A model generated the notes under the pieces. It saw nothing but the letters and a program-made list of their open reading frames with translations, did not search any database and was not told the origin of the DNA. 64,000 bases of DNA, from the sequence record NC_019406.1. One strand, 5' to 3'. The position numbers and the translations under genes are program-made. Shown here piece after piece: positions 12,133 through 40,688 of the stretch. The first letter of the stretch is position 1. Every line of letters starts with the position of its first letter.

Positions 12133-12624
12133 ATGCCCGACTACAAGACGAACGATCCCAAGGGCTACATGGGCGACCCCCGCCGGGGCGCCGCCATGGG
12201 CCGCCCGACCTATGCGCCGGACGCCGCCGGCTGGACCGTGGAAGGCCTGGAAACGGCCGCCGCCCTCGAAGAGGACCGCGCCCGGATCGCCGAAGAGCAA
12301 CGCGAGAACCGCCCCGGCGACGGCTACAAGCGCCAGTGCTGGGAAGCCGCCGCCGCGTCGTTCCGCAAGGAAGCCGAACGCCTCCGTTCGCTCATCCCGG
12401 CCGCCCGCGCCATGCTCGCCGCCTCGCCGAAGATCACCCTTCAACGCGTCCGCCTGGACTCGGGCGGCTACGACTCGAACGGAACCTATTTCGGGCATGA
12501 CCTCCCCCTGTATTGGGCGGCGGACGAGTCCGGCGACTATGACGCGACGTTCCGCGCCGCCGACCGCAACGCGGCGAAGGCCATCGTTCGCGAGACGTAC
12601 CCCGGCGCCCGCTTCCACAACTAG
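12133..12624 (+). CDS. Hypothetical early protein (163 aa; RLDSGGYD..G.YFG motif)
   Basis: Cassette leader + GGAG. Confidence 0.85.
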   Translation: MPDYKTNDPKGYMGDPRRGAAMGRPTYAPDAAGWTVEGLETAAALEEDRARIAEEQRENRPGDGYKRQCWEAAAASFRKEAERLRSLIPAARAMLAASPKITLQRVRLDSGGYDSNGTYFGHDLPLYWAADESGDYDATFRAADRNAAKAIVRETYPGARFHN

Positions 12625-12701
12625 CTGGCGTTAAGGGGTTGTTAAGAAATAGCCGGTAGGTTCATCCCTACCGGCGCACCCCGCGCCCTGGAGAAAATCG
12701 G

Positions 12702-13550
12702 ATGACCTCGCAACTCTGCATCGCCGACGAAAACGCCGCCCTGGATTTCCTGGCGCGCGCTGTCCCCGCCCTCTGTGACGCCGGCATAATGCCGCCGACG
12801 CTGGATATCCTGGACTCGCTCGCCGCCAATCCGAACGCATACGGCCTTAGCCGCGTCCCGACCCTGGCGCCCCTCGCCGCCGAATGGGCGGGGCCGTATC
12901 AGACGCAAGCGAACGACGGCGAAGGCCCGACCACGGTCCGGGCTCTGATCGTCGCCGCGCTGGGCGCCGATGAGTCCGGCAACTTCGATATCGGGTTCCG
13001 CACCTACGCCGTGAACGACACGGAACACTGGAATCTTGCCGGGACTCCTCTTGAGGGCGTGCCGGCCTATAGCCTGTATTTGATCCGCGAAGGCGAGCAA
13101 ACTTACATGTGCTCGCTCACGCCATCGAGCTACGCCTATGGGATTCAGAACGTGTTCCTCTATCCCGATCAAGAGGGCTTGCCGGCTGTCAATGAGTACG
13201 GGCAAACGGCGGTTGAAGCGTACATGGACGCTGAAAACCCCGAATATGAGGCCGTCGAAGATACCTATTTCGGGTATATGGGCGACCGCGAAGCCCTGGA
13301 CCGCCGCGAAGCCGAAGAGGGCGACGTTTCGGAGCGCCTTAGCTTCGATAAGTCGGTTTTCCGTGTGGACCTCTCCACGCTGGACGGGTTCGCCGCGTCG
13401 CCGGCCAATCCCCGCGAAACGACCGCGTTCGCCGACTTCGAAACCCTCGCCGCCGCCTTCTACAAGGCCGCGTGCGACTCGGCTTGGGAGGACGCGAAGG
13501 AATACGTTAGCGGCAACGCTACGGAACCGCGCATTTTAACGGGTTGTTAA
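12702..13550 (+). CDS. Hypothetical acidic early protein (282 aa)
   Basis: Cassette leader + GGAG. Confidence 0.85.
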   Translation: MTSQLCIADENAALDFLARAVPALCDAGIMPPTLDILDSLAANPNAYGLSRVPTLAPLAAEWAGPYQTQANDGEGPTTVRALIVAALGADESGNFDIGFRTYAVNDTEHWNLAGTPLEGVPAYSLYLIREGEQTYMCSLTPSSYAYGIQNVFLYPDQEGLPAVNEYGQTAVEAYMDAENPEYEAVEDTYFGYMGDREALDRREAEEGDVSERLSFDKSVFRVDLSTLDGFAASPANPRETTAFADFETLAAAFYKAACDSAWEDAKEYVSGNATEPRILTGC

Positions 13551-16497: not shown

Positions 16498-16558
16498 CCT
16501 CTTGTTAAGAAATACCCTCTAGGGTAGGCACATGGGCAAGGCCCTAGGAGACAAAGCG

Positions 16559-16768
16559 ATGACCCTGCATCACACCCTTATGACCGCTCTGGACACCGCC
16601 CAGATGAACGGCGCGCAAGCCGATCCGCTTCACGCGGACATCCGCCGCGCCCTGCGCCTCGCCCAGATGGCGGGCGTTACCCTGGACACGGCCGAAGAGG
16701 TCGCCGCCGCCGTCCTGCGCATGAAGGTTGCGCAGCAACAGGCCCGCCGCCGCTCGCGCCGGGCCTAA
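16559..16768 (+). CDS. Hypothetical early protein (69 aa)
   Basis: Promoter 16494 + AGGAG. Confidence 0.75.
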   Translation: MTLHHTLMTALDTAQMNGAQADPLHADIRRALRLAQMAGVTLDTAEEVAAAVLRMKVAQQQARRRSRRA

Positions 16769-16869
16769 GGAAGAAAGTTGAAGGCGTTTACCTCTTGTTA
16801 AGAAATAGGGGGTATGGTCTTCACATGGGCGGCGGACTTCCCCGCCGCCCTCACCTCGGAGCCCCTGCC

Positions 16870-17082
16870 ATGTTCCCCCGTAACGTCGCGATCGCCGAAG
16901 CCGCTCAGTTCTCGCAAGTGTCGATGGCTGATTACCGTGAGCACGTCGCCGAAGAGCGTCACGCGATGCGCGTGAAGCTGGCGAAGCAAGCCAAGCTTAA
17001 GGCGGACATCAAGGCGGGCGCGTTCGCCTTCGCCCTGGCCTTCGTGGCTGCTGGCGTGGTCCTCGCTCTGGGCGTGTTCTAG
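16870..17082 (+). CDS. Early protein with C-terminal TM helix (70 aa)
   Basis: Cassette leader + GGAG; hydrophobic C-terminus. Confidence 0.75.
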   Translation: MFPRNVAIAEAAQFSQVSMADYREHVAEERHAMRVKLAKQAKLKADIKAGAFAFALAFVAAGVVLALGVF

Positions 17083-17403
17083 AGGGAGTGGGTCGCCCTC
17101 GGCGAGAGTCGAGGGTACCTGAAAGAATCCATCCGGACCCCTTGACAAAATCGGGGGGCCGGGGGAGGGTCGAGTTTCAAAATGGGACACCCAGGGACCC
17201 AAGGCCGGGGTGGGTTGTTAACCATTTTTCCGGGGCGCCTAGTGTAGTGACCGCGTTTTGATGTGCGGGTCAATGGCGTCAGAGATTTCGAAAAATTTCT
17301 CAGAGGAGTAGGGGACCCAGGCCAGCGGCTTTTGGATTCGAAAACACGAATCTGGCTGACCGAAATTTTATTTCTGTAAAATAGGGGTCAATAAGCTCAA
17401 ACG

Positions 17404-17438
17404 AAAAAGCCCGGCGGTGATCGGCACCGCCGGGCTTT
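17404..17438. terminator. Intrinsic terminator, probably ending the minus-strand capsid-paralog transcript
   Basis: AAAAAGCCCGGCGGTG-ATCGG-CACCGCCGGGCTTT. Confidence 0.75.
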
Positions 17439-17494
17439 CGTGAACGAAACTCGCGCTCCGCTCAGCCTGAACAAGACCATAAACCACAGCCCGA

Positions 17495-18460
17495 TCAGGC
17501 CGTCAAGCGAGCCCCGGTAAGACCCGACAGGCGCACTCCGGCGCGACCGCTCATCACGCCCAGGGCGACCAGCCATTCGTAGCGCGTACGCTGCACCGGA
17601 ATGTGCTCGACGTAGCCCAGGTCATCCACCTGGACCGAACCGTTCTGGAGTCCGGTGACGCCGTGCTTGCCGATATTCAGTACGTAGGCATCCGTTTCCA
17701 AGATGGCTGGCTTACCTTCCAGGCGGTAATCGACGATCACGGTGACCGTGTTGTCCTCGTCGGCGGTGGTGTAGCGATAGGTGCCCTTAGTGCGCTTGAG
17801 CAGCCGACGCTTCTTCATGGCGTCGCGCATTTCGACCGAAACGAGAAGGTAGTTGGGATCGTCGACCATGGCGATTGCTTGGTCCAGGACAGTACGGCTG
17901 AGCACGCCGTTGACTTGGAAGTGCTGACCGCCCACGAAGCGCTGACGCAGCCCATCGGCGACGCGCGGATCGACGTCCGAGTCACCGTTCACTAGTGAGT
18001 TGGTCAGGTAGTAGGCCTTCTCACGCAGGTACATGCGGCGCTGCGCCGGCACGATCGCTTCGCCGTGAGTCTTGATGAGGGCCTTGTCGACGTCGCAGTC
18101 GCCGCCGGCGATTTTCAGGACTTCAACAGTGGGGTTGACCACGCCGACTCCGCTATTCATGGTCTCGGGGCGGCCCTTGAAGGCGATTCCAGGCAGCCAG
18201 CCCTCTTGGATATAGGTGAAGCTACCTCCCGCAATGTCGAGCCAGGGCAGCGCGCGCATCAGTTCGGATTCGGACAGATATTGGACGGCTTCAGCGTAGA
18301 GGTCGCCCGGCTTATCCTTAGCGGACCAGGGCGTACCGGCTTGCGCCGTGATGTTGGTGGTATCCATGGCCGGCGAAGCGGCAGCTTGGGTCGCAACGTT
18401 GAGCGCGGGAACGGCGACGAACAGGCCCAGCAGGGACTTAAAGAAGTTACGACGTTGCAC
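17495..18460 (-). CDS. Major capsid protein paralog (HK97-type) with N-terminal twin-arginine signal peptide (321 aa)
   Basis: AGGAG SD 6 nt before GTG 18460 gives MQRRNFFKSLLGLFVAVPALNVATQAAA. The body shares blocks with 39756-40688: GVGVVN, VEVLKI.GGD.DVDKALIKTHG, YVLNIG..GV.GLQNG, RTR.EWL, VMSGRA. Confidence 0.85.
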   Translation of the reverse strand: MQRRNFFKSLLGLFVAVPALNVATQAAASPAMDTTNITAQAGTPWSAKDKPGDLYAEAVQYLSESELMRALPWLDIAGGSFTYIQEGWLPGIAFKGRPETMNSGVGVVNPTVEVLKIAGGDCDVDKALIKTHGEAIVPAQRRMYLREKAYYLTNSLVNGDSDVDPRVADGLRQRFVGGQHFQVNGVLSRTVLDQAIAMVDDPNYLLVSVEMRDAMKKRRLLKRTKGTYRYTTADEDNTVTVIVDYRLEGKPAILETDAYVLNIGKHGVTGLQNGSVQVDDLGYVEHIPVQRTRYEWLVALGVMSGRAGVRLSGLTGARLTA

Positions 18461-18533
18461 CTGAATCTCCTGATTGATGGAACGGCTCAGGTTGTATCGC
18501 GTGCCAGTATGGCTGTCCATACATCGCGAGTGA

Positions 18534-19175
18534 TTAAGGAGTCCGATAGATCGCGGTCTTCTCGACATCCACGCGATAGCCCGGCATCGGGCCGATCTTC
18601 CGCTTCCCATCCATACGGATGCCGCCAAAGCGGTCACCGCGCGTGCTGTCGTACGGCGCCGGCGTCTCCGCCGCACCAACGCCCACTTCGTACCAGCCCT
18701 GGTCGGCCGTCTCGACCAGCAGGGTCGCGTGAGCCAACCCGATGCCGGGGCTCCACATCATCAGGATCATTCGGTCGCCGCCCTGCCCGGCCTTGTGGAG
18801 CCGCTCGGCCAGGGTGAGCGCGTAATCCTCGCAGTCGCCGCACAGGGTGTCATTGTCCCAGAAGTCCGCGTTGCCGATGCGCAGCTTGTCATCGCGGTAC
18901 TCGAACTTCTTGCGCATCTCCAGGTCGATCGAGATCACATCGGTCGATGCGAGCGCCTTGCCCGGCCCGCCGGCGCAGATCAACGCCTTCGGCGCACGTC
19001 GACAGAAGTACGCTAGCTCGTAAATGTTGATCGCTGCAACTCGCGCGGGCGAAATGGTCGAATTGACCGCGCCGCCGCGTACCGCGCCAATTAAAGGGAT
19101 TTCAGGGCACTGCGACGCGGCCGGCGAGCAGGACAGCAGGGCAAGGCAGGCGAGGAGTCCGGCGAGAATACGCAT
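18534..19175 (-). CDS. Predicted lipoprotein, transglutaminase-like cysteine protease (BTLCP / peptidase C93 / LapG-like)
   Basis: Signal MRILAGLLACLALLS-C (lipobox); catalytic-type motifs GDCEDYAL and HATLLV. Confidence 0.75.
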   Translation of the reverse strand: MRILAGLLACLALLSCSPAASQCPEIPLIGAVRGGAVNSTISPARVAAINIYELAYFCRRAPKALICAGGPGKALASTDVISIDLEMRKKFEYRDDKLRIGNADFWDNDTLCGDCEDYALTLAERLHKAGQGGDRMILMMWSPGIGLAHATLLVETADQGWYEVGVGAAETPAPYDSTRGDRFGGIRMDGKRKIGPMPGYRVDVEKTAIYRTP

Positions 19176-19240
19176 GACAGGAAGTCCGGCAGGAGAATGC
19201 CAGGAATCCTGTCACCATCAAACGTGACTCGCAAGTAATG

Positions 19241-19467
19241 AAAAACCCCGCCGAGACGCGGACGCCATCCCAGCGGGGTTCCTTCCCATCCTTGACTGGA
19301 GAGGGTCAAGAACGCCGCCGTTCTAGGCAACGCCTTGAGAAACGTCAAGCTGCGAAAGGAAAAGCCCGCCAGCGCGACATGGGGGGAGCGCTGACGGGCT
19401 AGGCGGTCCAGCGCGGTGGGGCCGACGCCGGAGACTTCTATAGAACAGGCGTCGAGATGCCTGTCAA
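19241..19467 (-). ncRNA. Candidate small RNA / attenuated leader: sigma70-like promoter followed by two terminator-type hairpins
   Basis: TTGACA at 19467-19462 with CTATAG -10; hairpins 19360-19400 and 19241-19280 end in T-runs on the minus strand. Confidence 0.45.
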
Positions 19468-19597
19468 CATGCGACCATGTCATCGCGCATAGAAAAAGCC
19501 CGGCGCTCTGGGTTTGCGCGCCGGGCCTCAACACTTGCTGCACAGGGAAGGCCCCTAGGTCTTAGGCCACCCTGAAGTCCTCTGGTGAAATCAAGAG

Positions 19598-19609
19598 CTA
19601 AGCGCGCAT
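19598..19609 (-). other. Three-codon minigene ATG CGC GCT TAG with perfect SD, inside a ~170-nt transcription unit
   Basis: AGGAGG 5 nt upstream; promoter TTGACA-N17-TAGCGT at 19696-19668; terminator 19493-19526. Confidence 0.45.
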
Positions 19610-19813
19610 GACAGCCTCCTGTGACGAGTTTCTGGGAAATCCCTCAGGTTTCCTGTGTGAAGTCTTCACGCTAGAGATGCCCTTAGAAGGTGTCAACCAG
19701 AAAAGCACGTGGGGTTCAAAAATCCTGGCATTTCAACCTCAGCGTTAACATGTCTTATTTCGTGGCGCTCGATTTTTAGCTTGACAGCGTGACTGGCACG
19801 TTCCCGAGCAACG

Positions 19814-19850
19814 TGCCAGTTTTCTTGACATGCCCTGTTAACCATGTCAT
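19814..19850 (+). promoter_or_regulatory. Portal promoter candidate TGCCAG-N5-TTGACA with TTAACCAT CtrA half-site
   Basis: Same architecture at 30406, 38510, 41861, 42951, 58709. Confidence 0.6.
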
Positions 19851-19956
19851 CCGTGGCGTCGATCAGGGCCGCGTGCCCTGGTTCCCTCCTTCGTCATAAG
19901 CCTTGGGCGGGGTCCGTGAGTAGAGTTTTGGACCTCGCCCACTTTTTCAAAAGAAC

Positions 19957-21942
19957 ATGGCTGGTCTTTCACCCAACTCCGCGAACATTCGACGCACGAA
20001 GCGTGGCGCTCAACAGTTCACGCACCTCGTGGTCCATCCGGAGTACGAGTATTATCGTCCGGATTGGGCGAAGATTCGCGACGCCATCGCCGGCGAACGC
20101 GAGATCAAGGCTCAGGGTGTCAAGTACCTGAAGGCCCCGAAGGGCTTTGACGACGAAGACTACGCGAACTACCTCGATCGCGCCGCCTTCTACAACATGA
20201 CGTCGCAGACGCAGGCCGGCATGGTCGGTCAGATTTTCCGCCGTCCGCCCGTCATCCGTAACCTCCCCAACACGGGCGCGATCACGGGCCGTGATGCCGA
20301 AGGTGGTGTCCAGGTCGTGGCGCCGGCGTCGATCGGCAAGCTACTCACTCAGCTTCAACGCTTCGCCAAGGACGGCACGTCCCACCAGGGTTTCGCCAAG
20401 ACGGTCGCGCTGGAGCAGGTGGCGATGGGCCGTTTCGGCGCCCTGGTCGATGTGGCTCCAAGCAGCGATCCCACCGCGCCGGCGAAGTCCTACACGGTCG
20501 GCTACGCCGCCGAGAACATCGTCGACTGGACCGTAGAGGACGTCGACGGTTTCTACGTCCCGACCCGCATTCTGCTGCGTGAGTTCGAGCGCGTGGATGA
20601 GCACGCCACGCCGTCGCAGCAAAATCCCTGGATCGGACGCGAAGGCAGCGAGACTGCCCAGCGCACGAGTGGCGGTCGCCGCGCCGGCCTCGCGGAACGC
20701 CAGGGCTCGGCCCGTGCTGACGCGCTGGCTCGCCCGTCGCGCTTCACCAGCAGCTACACCTTCCGCACGATCTACCGCGAACTGATCCTGGAACTCCAGA
20801 AGGACGGCAGCCGGGTCTACAAGCAGTTCGTCTACGTCGAGGACCCGCTGGGCCAAGCCCGCGACGTCTACACTCCCATGGTGCGCGGGCGCACCCTCCC
20901 CTTCATCCCCTTCGTGTTCTTCGGCTCCATGTCGAACGCGGCCGACTGCGAAAAGCCGCCGCTGCTCGACATCGTCGAATTGAACCTGAAGCACTATCGC
21001 ACCTACGCCGAACTGGAGCACGGCCGCTTCTTCACGGCGCTGCCCACCTACTATGCACCCGAACTCGACGACTCCGACGCCTCGGAATATCACATTGGTC
21101 CGGGCCGGGTCTGGGTTGTCGACAAGGAGAGCGGCATCCCCGGCATCATCGAGTTCAAGGGCGAGGGTCTGAAGACCCTGGAGCGCGCCCTGAACGAGAA
21201 GGAGCAGCAGATCGCCGCGATCGGCGGACGCCTGATGCCCGGCATGTCCAAGTCGGTCTCCGAGTCGGACAACCAATCGGCGCTGCGTGAAGCCAACGAG
21301 CAGTCGCTGCTTCTGAACGTCATCATGGCGCTCGAAGACGGCATGACCTCGGTCGTTCGTTACTGGCTAATGTTCCGCGACATCCCGCTGACCGACACCG
21401 CGACGCTCCGCTACGAGATCGACGCGACCTTCCTGACGACGGCCCTGGACGCCCGCGCCCTGCGCGCGATCCAGCAACTCTACGAAGGTGGCCTGCTGCC
21501 GATCGACGCTCTGTACGAGAACTTCGTCAAGAACGGCATCATCCCATCGACCCAGACGCTGGAAGAATTCACGATCAAGATGAACGATCCGAAGTCGTTC
21601 ATTGGTCAGCCGGACGCGATCGCGATGCGTCGTGGCTACGTCAGCCGCCAGCAGGAACTGGATCAGCAGCGCGCGGCCCGCGACGCCGACTTCCAGCAGC
21701 AGGAACTGGAGCAGGCCGAGCGCCATCTGGAGATCGACGAGGAGAAGCTGCGCATCTCCGCCAAGGTCGGTTCGACCAGCGTGGCCGCGAGCCGCAAGTT
21801 GGGCGATCCCGAGCAAGCCAAGCCGTCCAAGGCCGAGCAGGCTCAGATCGACGCCCAGCAGAAGCAGGCCGCCGCCAAGCCTGTCACGCCCACCCCCGGC
21901 ACCGTCCAACGCGGCCGTCCGCCGCAAAATGGAGCGAGCTAA
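19957..21942 (+). CDS. Portal protein (DUF4055-type)
   Basis: PDWAKIRDAIAGE...YLDRAAFYN motif, 661 aa, position upstream of head genes. Confidence 0.85.
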   Translation: MAGLSPNSANIRRTKRGAQQFTHLVVHPEYEYYRPDWAKIRDAIAGEREIKAQGVKYLKAPKGFDDEDYANYLDRAAFYNMTSQTQAGMVGQIFRRPPVIRNLPNTGAITGRDAEGGVQVVAPASIGKLLTQLQRFAKDGTSHQGFAKTVALEQVAMGRFGALVDVAPSSDPTAPAKSYTVGYAAENIVDWTVEDVDGFYVPTRILLREFERVDEHATPSQQNPWIGREGSETAQRTSGGRRAGLAERQGSARADALARPSRFTSSYTFRTIYRELILELQKDGSRVYKQFVYVEDPLGQARDVYTPMVRGRTLPFIPFVFFGSMSNAADCEKPPLLDIVELNLKHYRTYAELEHGRFFTALPTYYAPELDDSDASEYHIGPGRVWVVDKESGIPGIIEFKGEGLKTLERALNEKEQQIAAIGGRLMPGMSKSVSESDNQSALREANEQSLLLNVIMALEDGMTSVVRYWLMFRDIPLTDTATLRYEIDATFLTTALDARALRAIQQLYEGGLLPIDALYENFVKNGIIPSTQTLEEFTIKMNDPKSFIGQPDAIAMRRGYVSRQQELDQQRAARDADFQQQELEQAERHLEIDEEKLRISAKVGSTSVAASRKLGDPEQAKPSKAEQAQIDAQQKQAAAKPVTPTPGTVQRGRPPQNGAS

Positions 21943-39755: not shown

Positions 39756-40688
39756 ATGGCTGCCTTGACTCTGCTCGAAGCCTCTGATCTGGCGATGGGC
39801 AACGATGAGGTGAAGCGTTCGGCAATCATCGAACTCTTCGCCTACCCGGACCTGCTGAAGGTGCTGCCGTTCATGGACGTGCCCGGCGGTTCGTACACCT
39901 ACACGCAAGAAGGCGCCCTGCCCGGCGTGGCCTTCCGTGGCTTCAACGAAGCCTACACCAACGGCGTCGGCGTCGTGAACTCGCAAGTCGAAGTTCTGAA
40001 GATCGTCGGTGGCGACCTGGACGTCGACAAGGCCCTCATCAAGACCCACGGCGCGGACATCCGTACCCGTCAGGAAAAGATGAAGGTCAAGGCTCTGTCG
40101 CTGTTCCTGGCCGGCAAGATCATCAACGGTGACTCCGAGCAGGACCCGCGCGAATTCGACGGTCTGCGCAAGCGCATCGTCGGCTCGCAGCGTATCCCGG
40201 CCGGCAACACCAACGGTGGCGACGCGCTGTCGCTGCAAATCCTGGACGAAGCCATCGACGCCGTCGAAGGTGCGACCCACCTCGTCATGTCGAAGCGCAT
40301 GCGCAACCTGCTGTCGGCCGCCAGCCGTCAGACCTCGGTCGCGGGCTTCATCACCTGGGACAAGACCGAGTTCGGCGAGCGCATCGCCTACTACAACGAC
40401 CTGCCCATCTTGGTCACCGACTACGACGACAAGAACGTCCAAGTCATCGACTTCAACGAAGCCTGCCCCGGCGGCGGTACCACCGGTACCTCGATCTACG
40501 TCCTGAACATCGGCGACAGCGGCGTGATCGGCCTCCAGAACGGCGTCATGGAAGTTGACGACCTCGGTCAGGTCAACGACAAGCCGGTGTACCGCACCCG
40601 CATCGAATGGCTGATCAGCCTCGCCGTCATGAGCGGCCGTGCTGCGGCCCGCGTGTGGGGCATCAAGAAGGCTCCGGTCGTCGCGTAA
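39756..40688 (+). CDS. Major capsid protein (HK97 fold, 310 aa)
   Basis: Strong SD (AAGGGA), high-expression codon use, follows the scaffold; LPGVAFRGFNE and GGDLDVDKALI motifs. Confidence 0.9.
   Translation: MAALTLLEASDLAMGNDEVKRSAIIELFAYPDLLKVLPFMDVPGGSYTYTQEGALPGVAFRGFNEAYTNGVGVVNSQVEVLKIVGGDLDVDKALIKTHGADIRTRQEKMKVKALSLFLAGKIINGDSEQDPREFDGLRKRIVGSQRIPAGNTNGGDALSLQILDEAIDAVEGATHLVMSKRMRNLLSAASRQTSVAGFITWDKTEFGERIAYYNDLPILVTDYDDKNVQVIDFNEACPGGGTTGTSIYVLNIGDSGVIGLQNGVMEVDDLGQVNDKPVYRTRIEWLISLAVMSGRAAARVWGIKKAPVVA

Follow-up and report, generated by a model that had tools for sequence, protein, structure and literature searches.

The gp036 gene of Caulobacter phage CcrColossus encodes a paralog of the phage's own major capsid protein, headed by a predicted twin-arginine (Tat) signal peptide that is kept across an old clade of related proteins. 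In the reading preferred here, to which a probability of about 0.6 is assigned, gp036 is an accessory protein from this paralog clade of phiCbK-like giant phages (Dolichocephalovirinae), which is exported in the folded state by the Tat pathway and is not a building block of the virion. The window analysed is a stretch of 64 kb, representing the left part of the CcrColossus genome (JX100810 / NC_019406, 279,967 bp), with which it agrees at 100% identity and with unchanged coordinates. The features on which the argument depends are as follows.

17409..17435, minus strand: intrinsic terminator, a hairpin (17412..17435) followed by a T-run, ending the gp037-gp036 transcription unit and present in phage CcrPW too
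17495..18460, minus strand: gp036, capsid-protein paralog (HK97 fold, epsilon15 gp7 type), 321 aa including the stop codon, supported by the open reading frame, annotation, identity to gp081, phrog_212 and NF045672 matches, and AlphaFold2 and Foldseek results
18284..18376, minus strand: linker, approximately residues 29-58 of gp036, without alignment to the N-arm of gp081 and modelled for the most part with low confidence
18377..18460, minus strand: predicted twin-arginine signal peptide, residues 1-28 of gp036, composed of MQRRNFFK, the h-region SLLGLFVAVPAL and the c-region NVATQAAA, with the predicted cut before SP
18467..18471, minus strand: Shine-Dalgarno sequence AGGAG of gp036, 6 nt upstream of GTG 18460
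18534..19175, minus strand: gp037, BTLCP / Peptidase_C93 cysteine protease with a lipoprotein-like signal (MRILAGLLACLALLSC), directly upstream of gp036
39756..40688, plus strand: gp081, the true major capsid protein and paralog of gp036, identified by sequence searches and in Table 2 of Gill et al. 2012 (PMC3556154)

A capsid-protein paralog outside the head genes

The kinship of gp036 to the capsid protein encoded at 39756, proposed in the initial annotation, is firmly established, as the two proteins share 43% identity over 287 residues (E = 2e-71). Moreover, gp036 matches the phrog_212 family 'major head protein' (2.9e-51) and lies just above the cut-off of NF045672, the epsilon15 gp7-type capsid model (78.1 bits against a cut-off of 75). 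The Pfam family PF20911, in which gp081 scores 37.4 bits, gives no match to gp036 at E <= 0.01. This paralogy is already published: gene 36 was described by Gill et al. (2012; PMC3556154) as a diverged and translocated duplicate of capsid gene 81, located about 21 kb away, and that paper makes no mention of a twin-arginine signal.

The capsid fold that had been expected for gp036 is recovered with confidence in an AlphaFold2 model, based on a 145-sequence alignment (mean pLDDT 87); this model was used instead of one built on a 7-sequence alignment, which was unusable (pLDDT 38). Residues 52-321 are modelled as an HK97-type fold with its E-loop hairpin, spine helix and A-domain, and residues 1-50 are disordered, with an average confidence of about 50 or lower, in keeping with a signal and a linker behind it. 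When the model was compared with the PDB by Foldseek, 371 matches were obtained at E <= 0.001, and the best 50 of the 371 are all HK97-fold shells or their engineered derivatives, headed by family 2A encapsulins (E about 1e-13, TM about 0.6), after which come many phage capsids. Searching the PDB with gp036 by sequence alone detected no solved structure.

The encapsulins, which give the best structural match to the model, are an example of the capsid fold in non-virion use. Nevertheless, they are cytoplasmic, cell-encoded and paired with cargo genes bearing targeting peptides, unlike gp036, which is phage-encoded, bears an export signal and has no cargo gene adjacent to it. The similarity is at the level of the fold only, with no Pfam or NCBIfam match to encapsulin families and no PDB sequence match.

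The relationship to the epsilon15 gp7-type capsid proteins (PF20911 / NF045672 / phrog_212, including CcrColossus gp81 and phiCbK gp68) is of a different kind, as it consists of homology along the whole fold, the HK97 fold itself and shared motifs. What sets gp036 apart from these proteins is the exchange of the N-arm for an export signal and linker, the lack of a near-invariant E-loop arginine, a location outside the structural module and dispensability in a sister phage. No part of gp036 corresponds to residues 1-24 of gp081, and residues 1-58 of gp036 are likewise unmatched in gp081. The statement that the N-arm was replaced by a signal and linker holds for gp036 and its two closest relatives only; it fails for most other paralogs, in which the N-terminal motif TLLxMA is retained and follows the signal and a Pro/Ala-rich linker.

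As for the locus, gp036 is called 'hypothetical protein' in GenBank and 'major head protein' in RefSeq, and both annotations begin at GTG 18460. The sequence upstream of this codon, caggagattcag, contains AGGAG with a 6-nt spacer, and inspection of the sequence upstream of the internal ATG (MDTTN) revealed no Shine-Dalgarno-type motif, so the start at GTG 18460 with AGGAG at -6, as originally assigned, stands. The longest minus-strand reading frame reaches TTG 18679, and such an extension overlaps gp037. At the other end of the gene, the claimed terminator is indeed present at 17409..17435 as a hairpin and then a minus-strand T-run. The position of gp036 away from the head genes was likewise described correctly: the distance to capsid gene gp081 is 21.3 kb, and the two genes lie on opposite strands.

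The neighbouring gp037 is recognized by PF06035 (31.2 bits, cut-off 27) and phrog_12671 (2.9e-97). Together with gp036 it makes up a small unit on the minus strand, flanked by the terminal repeat and the portal gene. The two genes are probably co-transcribed, and both products appear, from their predicted signals, to be directed to the envelope. This pairing is not general, since the protease occurs without the paralog in CcrPW and the paralog without the protease in other phages. An Rfam scan of positions 16500..20200 yielded no meaningful non-coding RNA.

CcrColossus, a prolate-headed giant siphophage, is classified in the subfamily Dolichocephalovirinae. In CcrPW, a phage of the same genus, both flanks of gp036 are present at 89-90% identity and gp036 is absent.

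17490..18543 (1,054 bp): segment present in CcrColossus and missing from CcrPW, comprising gp036, the final few codons of gp037 and the 73 bp between the two genes, with blastn alignments breaking at 17489 and 18544

Without this segment, the protease gene of CcrPW runs directly into the shared terminator. A DNA search detected no ortholog of gp036 elsewhere in the CcrPW genome. At the junction, about 20 nt resemble the 3' end of gp036 (GGCGTCAAG compared with GGCCGTCAAG), a remnant which suggests, and does not prove, that the gene was lost in CcrPW. Since the sister phage has the same head type, gp036 is not an essential component of the head.

The predicted twin-arginine signal and its conservation

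The Tat pathway transports folded proteins, and its bacterial substrates share the consensus S/T-R-R-x-F-L-K. The N-terminus of gp036 reads MQRRNFFKSLLGLFVAVPALNVATQAAA/SP, where the slash marks the predicted cut. Residues 2-8 (QRRNFFK) place a hydrophobic residue and a lysine after the arginine pair, and they are followed by the uncharged h-region SLLGLFVAVPAL and by the signal peptidase I site AAA/SP, with a maximum 10-residue hydropathy of 2.42. The likeness to bacterial Tat substrates therefore comprises the QRRNFFK motif, a moderately hydrophobic h-region and an AxA site, and it extends to homologs with RRNLFK, RRFFLK, RRDLLK and RRTFFR; the difference is in the passenger, which is a viral capsid fold without a known cofactor.

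The specificity of this pattern was assessed by a strict rule of our own design, which asks for RR no later than residue 12, a hydrophobic position at +2 or +3, a minimum of 13 uncharged residues whose mean hydropathy is 1.8 or higher, and a small-x-small site. In the whole window, GTG 18460 of gp036 is the only one among 1092 candidate start sites that passes. In other words, the RRxFxK motif, hydrophobic core and AxA site that had been read directly from the sequence are distinctive within the window. The curated Tat profiles TIGR01409 and PF10518 gave no match at E <= 10, either to whole proteins or to 40-residue N-termini, in searches where HMMER filters drop most weak, short matches. The signal-like feature of gp036 is real and not a product of chance.

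The conservation of the signal was examined in relatives of gp036. A word-based search retrieved two metagenomic proteins, P0002 and P0003, which are 41% identical to gp036 over the full length and have the N-termini MHTHRRNLFKSAGLLLAGLMAPAAAFA. A profile made of these three sequences, compared with 1.84 billion cluster representatives, identified 592 family members; a word-indexed profile search found few. The strict rule is passed by 14 of 164 family proteins (the top matches fetched of the 592), and 13 of these 14 fall in one clade. Their N-termini include, for instance, MNRRFFLKAS, MNRREVFKLGG, MHRRDLLKTAA, MNRRSFLLTT, MNRRDLIKAG and MNRRNFLTVS. Besides these proteins, the signal is found in BL57_025 and, with KR replacing RR, in P0027. 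The second arginine of the pair is invariant in the alignment of signal-bearing paralogs, and the first is replaced only in P0027, by lysine.

The signal-bearing relatives are 27-48% identical to gp036, and RR occurs in 13 further 50%-identity cluster representatives and in BL57_025. Conservation of the motif among orthologs, which the initial annotation had named as a point to be checked, is therefore confirmed over considerable divergence. The homologs start at an ATG directly before the RR, after a purine-rich, Shine-Dalgarno-like stretch which is mostly of a clear AGGAG/GAGG type and weak in L014. Additionally, a small-x-small site is located at the usual distance in all 14 RR-carrying members; this is weak evidence of cleavage, because such sites arise easily in Ala-rich proteins.

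One cultured carrier apart from CcrColossus is Caulobacter phage BL57 (PQ287320), where BL57_025 (12401..13420) begins MNRRTFFRSVAALALTAASGLPASA/KPYP. The ordinary capsid gene of BL57 is at about 32.1 kb, 19 kb from BL57_025. A tblastn search of cultured phages with P0016, P0039, BL57_025 and P0014 found BL57_025 only, and the region of phage Kabachok that is syntenic to contig L011 contains no paralog.

The clade that contains gp036 in a maximum-likelihood tree (IQ-TREE, LG+C20) has 19 representatives (support 96/94), of which 15 bear the signal, one of them as KR. This clade is sister to gp081 (support 98/99), and a FastTree analysis of 146 rows agrees with the placement. The simplest reading of the tree would be that the capsid gene was duplicated once, long ago, in the phage lineage, and that the signal was gained early and then lost a few times. 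A similar signal, MKKINRREALKVGAIGAAGLATGAMFLPNKVLA/K, is present in P0118, which belongs to a different, low-GC capsid lineage and also has a non-structural context; its separate ancestry indicates a second, independent gain.

Four members of the clade are signal-less, namely P0012, P0013, P0014 and P0042. The assignment is certain for P0012 and P0014, as their upstream DNA has no room for a signal. P0013 begins MTFRNMLRSLLG, which looks like a decayed version of RRNFFKSLLG of gp036. The existence of such members means that the function of the paralogs may not strictly need the periplasm, and a model confined to the periplasm has yet to account for them.

Loss of capsid-specific features and genomic context

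The arginine of the E-loop (R of PGVAFRG) is present in 122 of 124 canonical family members. By contrast, none of the 18 paralogs has arginine at this position: gp036 and P0012 have lysine, and the others have F, H, L, D, E or a deletion. About half of the paralogs, BL57_025 among them, have lost most of the E-loop, which is retained in gp036. The positions of the fold core, on the other hand, are fixed in the paralogs (G170, R174, Y228, R291, E295 and W296). In the P0002/P0003 pair, dN/dS equals 0.37 and the signal peptides differ by one residue. Together, this ratio, the kept core residues and the lost arginine indicate that the paralogs are under selection, but not under selection for a capsid lattice. 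A residue that is nearly invariant in ordinary capsid proteins is missing from every paralog, which lends weight to the suggestion of a repurposed capsid fold.

These data bear directly on the view that gp036 might be a functionless, decaying duplicate with a Tat-like N-terminus acquired by chance. The protein is diverged, it is present in one of two sister phages, and branches in the paralog clade are long, as such a relic would predict. Its reading frame is nevertheless intact and preceded by a Shine-Dalgarno sequence, dN/dS is 0.37 for P0002 and P0003, the arginine pair is kept across deep divergence, a similar signal has been gained twice independently, and only one start site in 1092 passes the strict rule. 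Decay combined with chance is thus extremely unlikely.

A different question is whether gp036 serves in the virion, for example by occupying a vertex or capping the long prolate head. Phage T4 provides a precedent for a second, diverged copy of the capsid gene in one genome, as its vertex protein gp24 is a paralog of the capsid protein gp23, and gp036 is a full-length capsid paralog in a prolate-headed phage, named 'major head protein' in RefSeq. However, T4 gp24 is structural, encoded in the head module and devoid of an export signal, whereas gp036 lies outside the structural module on the opposite strand, is absent from the same-genus phage CcrPW, has lost the canonical E-loop arginine and carries a conserved export signal that is incompatible with head assembly in the cytoplasm. 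Moreover, in phiCbK, the only phage covered by the virion proteomics of Gill et al. (2012; PMC3556154), the band tentatively assigned to the vertex consists of ordinary capsid protein. A specialized virion role is accordingly regarded as highly improbable. As a major capsid protein, gp036 would be expected in the head module of all relatives and with the invariant residues of the family; it is found 21 kb from that module on the other strand, is missing from CcrPW and has lysine in place of the E-loop arginine.

The initial annotation had listed a shell or lattice among the conceivable fates of the exported protein. Following export, gp036 could build a periplasmic shell, a sheet or capsomer-like rings, enclosing something or altering the envelope. 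The fold is intact, its best structural matches are encapsulin shells and phage capsids, and the E-loop is retained in gp036 together with most motifs of the family, among them GGDxDVDKALIKTHG and RTRxEWL; the capacity of Tat to carry folded proteins, which is general knowledge, would also suit such an assembly. The option is weakened by the E-loop losses, which affect the arginine in all paralogs and the loop itself in about half of them, by the replacement of the N-arm in gp036, and by the lack of any cargo-like or partner gene conserved beside the paralogs. An assembly of this type is considered unlikely.

The gene neighbourhoods were examined at nine paralog loci, seven with signal-bearing genes and two with the signal-less P0012 and P0014, and in all of them the paralog lies among non-structural genes. 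Each of the seven signal-bearing genes is embedded in a long array of small genes of non-structural type, and those contigs that are long enough to judge measure 62-114 kb. The arrays consist of small early or metabolic genes of phiCbK-like contigs, and the neighbours encode, among others, CCA-adding enzyme, NAD synthase, PRTase, 2OG-Fe oxygenase, adenylosuccinate synthase, NADAR, PTH2, RNase T and GmrSD. Two of the contigs, L003 and L011, were tested by BLAST against cultured phages, and both are related to CcrColossus and to giant phages of Brevundimonas and Caulobacter. The position of the paralog varies between phages.

It was also considered whether the signal-bearing gene could be the sole capsid gene of the metagenomic phages L003 and L009. 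This was rejected, as the neighbours are non-structural (DUF7275 and others). The L003 and L009 contigs are related to regions of CcrColossus far from the head module, and a walk along a 94-kb contig reached no head module, so that the canonical capsid gene was not met directly.

Across the loci, no conserved partner gene, exported or otherwise, was found beside the paralogs, and the shared neighbours encode cytoplasmic enzymes. This bears on the idea that gp036 is a carrier, exporting through Tat a signal-less 'hitchhiker' partner of phage or host origin that is bound in the cytoplasm. Co-export of partners by Tat is an established mechanism, the capsid fold offers several protein-binding surfaces, and the signal-less variants could bind the same partner in the cytoplasm. 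Nonetheless, no neighbouring gene hints at a partner, and a carrier function is judged very unlikely.

Proposed role at the cell envelope

In the preferred reading, that of an exported accessory protein, gp036 would be transcribed together with gp037, the gene of a periplasmic BTLCP protease, divergently from the head genes. Its product would fold in the cytoplasm into the HK97-type fold; the host TatABC system would recognize MQRRNFFK and carry the folded protein over the inner membrane, where signal peptidase I would cut after AAA to release a soluble periplasmic protein of about 32 kDa. The calculated pI of the mature protein is 6.1. Devoid of the capsid-specific E-loop arginine and of the N-arm, gp036 would form no capsid lattice, and its fold could instead act as a binding platform at the cell envelope. 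On sequence grounds, export, cleavage and periplasmic residence are likely.

The signal might, alternatively, remain uncut and act as an anchor in the inner membrane, or oligomers with several signals might block the Tat translocon of the host, or keep it occupied, as a means of taking over the cell. Capsid-fold proteins tend to oligomerize, which would present several signals at once, the Pro/Ala-rich linkers behind the signal resemble tethers, and the small-x-small sites could be chance occurrences in Ala-rich sequence. These sites are, however, at the usual distance in 14 of 14 members with RR, a role of this kind needs nothing particular from the capsid fold, and variants without the signal persist. 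Anchoring or translocon jamming is therefore thought improbable.

For the released protein, a role in phage competition or in envelope control is suggested tentatively, either as a superinfection-exclusion factor or through masking of envelope structures. An accessory envelope role is favoured because the distribution of the gene is patchy, mobile and moron-like, and because the paralogs have lost lattice features and kept a stable fold with many binding surfaces; masking or remodelling of envelope structures could be part of it. Phage accessory proteins devoted to superinfection exclusion or directed to the envelope, such as the lipoproteins T5 Llp and Cor and the T4 proteins Sp and Imm, are patchily distributed. 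They resemble gp036 in being products of patchy accessory genes that are predicted to be, or act, outside the cytoplasm, and their folds are unrelated to that of gp036. To our knowledge, proteins of this type use Sec or lipoprotein signals and not Tat.

A full-text literature search, combining the Tat signal with capsid or HK97 terms, capsid paralogs and phage names, returned no description of an exported capsid homolog. The HK97 capsid fold is, as far as we know, described only in cytoplasmic assemblies, namely virions, gene transfer agents, satellite capsids and encapsulins. The export signal of gp036, its conservation throughout the clade, its second independent origin and the loss of capsid-specific residues thus appear to be new.

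More broadly, the odds seem about even that phiCbK-like giant phages possess a class of Tat-exported HK97-fold proteins, acting in the periplasm as a superinfection or envelope factor or as an assembly, which arose at least twice. These ideas can be tested in a model bacterium, as the host is C. crescentus; CcrColossus and BL57 are cultured carriers, and the near-identical CcrPW is a natural control. The RefSeq name 'major head protein' is probably wrong as a description of the function of gp036, which is a warning for the annotation of similar genes. If the proposed reading is true, gp036 and its relatives would represent a new type of accessory gene in giant phages, and the capsid fold would for the first time be known to work beyond the cytoplasm, so that a very common fold would acquire both a new compartment and a new job.

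The gp037 protease and its upstream gap

The gene directly upstream of gp036 (the capsid-protein paralog with a predicted twin-arginine signal) lies on the same strand, and a gap separates it from the portal gene.

window 18534..19175, minus strand: gp037, BTLCP / Peptidase_C93 (LapG-like) cysteine protease
window 19176..19956, minus strand: 780-bp gap that separates gp037 from the portal gene

With its lipoprotein-like signal, MRILAGLLACLALLSC, gp037 is a predicted periplasmic protease encoded by the phage, and it is kept at 90% DNA identity in CcrPW, the sister phage that lacks gp036. The gap contains two promoter-like sites of the TTGACA type and, on the minus strand, three hairpin-plus-T-run elements. 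These elements, located 5' of gp037, could be structured leaders, attenuators or small RNAs; an Rfam scan gave no meaningful match there.

TTAA-N7-TTAA sites in the terminal repeat

Exact TTAA-N7-TTAA sites occur 12 times between window positions 2687 and 16508, all on the plus strand, versus a chance expectation of about 0.13, and most of them read TTAACCTCTTGTTAA. All 12 are contained in the terminal repeat of about 17 kb, and none lies upstream of gp037/gp036. The sites look like CtrA boxes, and terminal repeats dense in CtrA sites have been described for phiCbK-like phages (PMC9437464).

Large terminase of a metagenomic relative

The large terminase of a metagenomic relative of CcrColossus has matches to intein and Hint-domain.

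L003, from 20482, and L017, 10694..13396: large terminase, 900 aa

Further copies and forms of the paralog

Among the matches listed, tblastn searches with the paralogs in CcrPW, Kabachok, Papperlapapp, CcrBL9, CcrRogue and BL64 gave the ordinary capsid gene only; for some queries there were two matching places in these genomes, and the second places could be more diverged paralogs or fragments. In sample SRR22868754, the signal-bearing paralogs P0039 and P0003, which differ from each other, lie on separate contigs (L014 and L009, respectively). Two other metagenomic members belong to the same clade as gp036.

L018, 652..1590: P0012, without signal peptide
L019, 8001..8981: P0014, without signal peptide

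Both have non-structural genes as neighbours, and 21 contigs carry P0014, some of them exceeding 200 kb; these two proteins are predicted to be cytoplasmic capsid paralogs. The N-terminus of the metagenomic protein P0013, which starts MTFRNMLRSLLGDIRR, resembles a decayed version of MQRRNFFKSLLG in gp036, and may be an export signal partway to loss.
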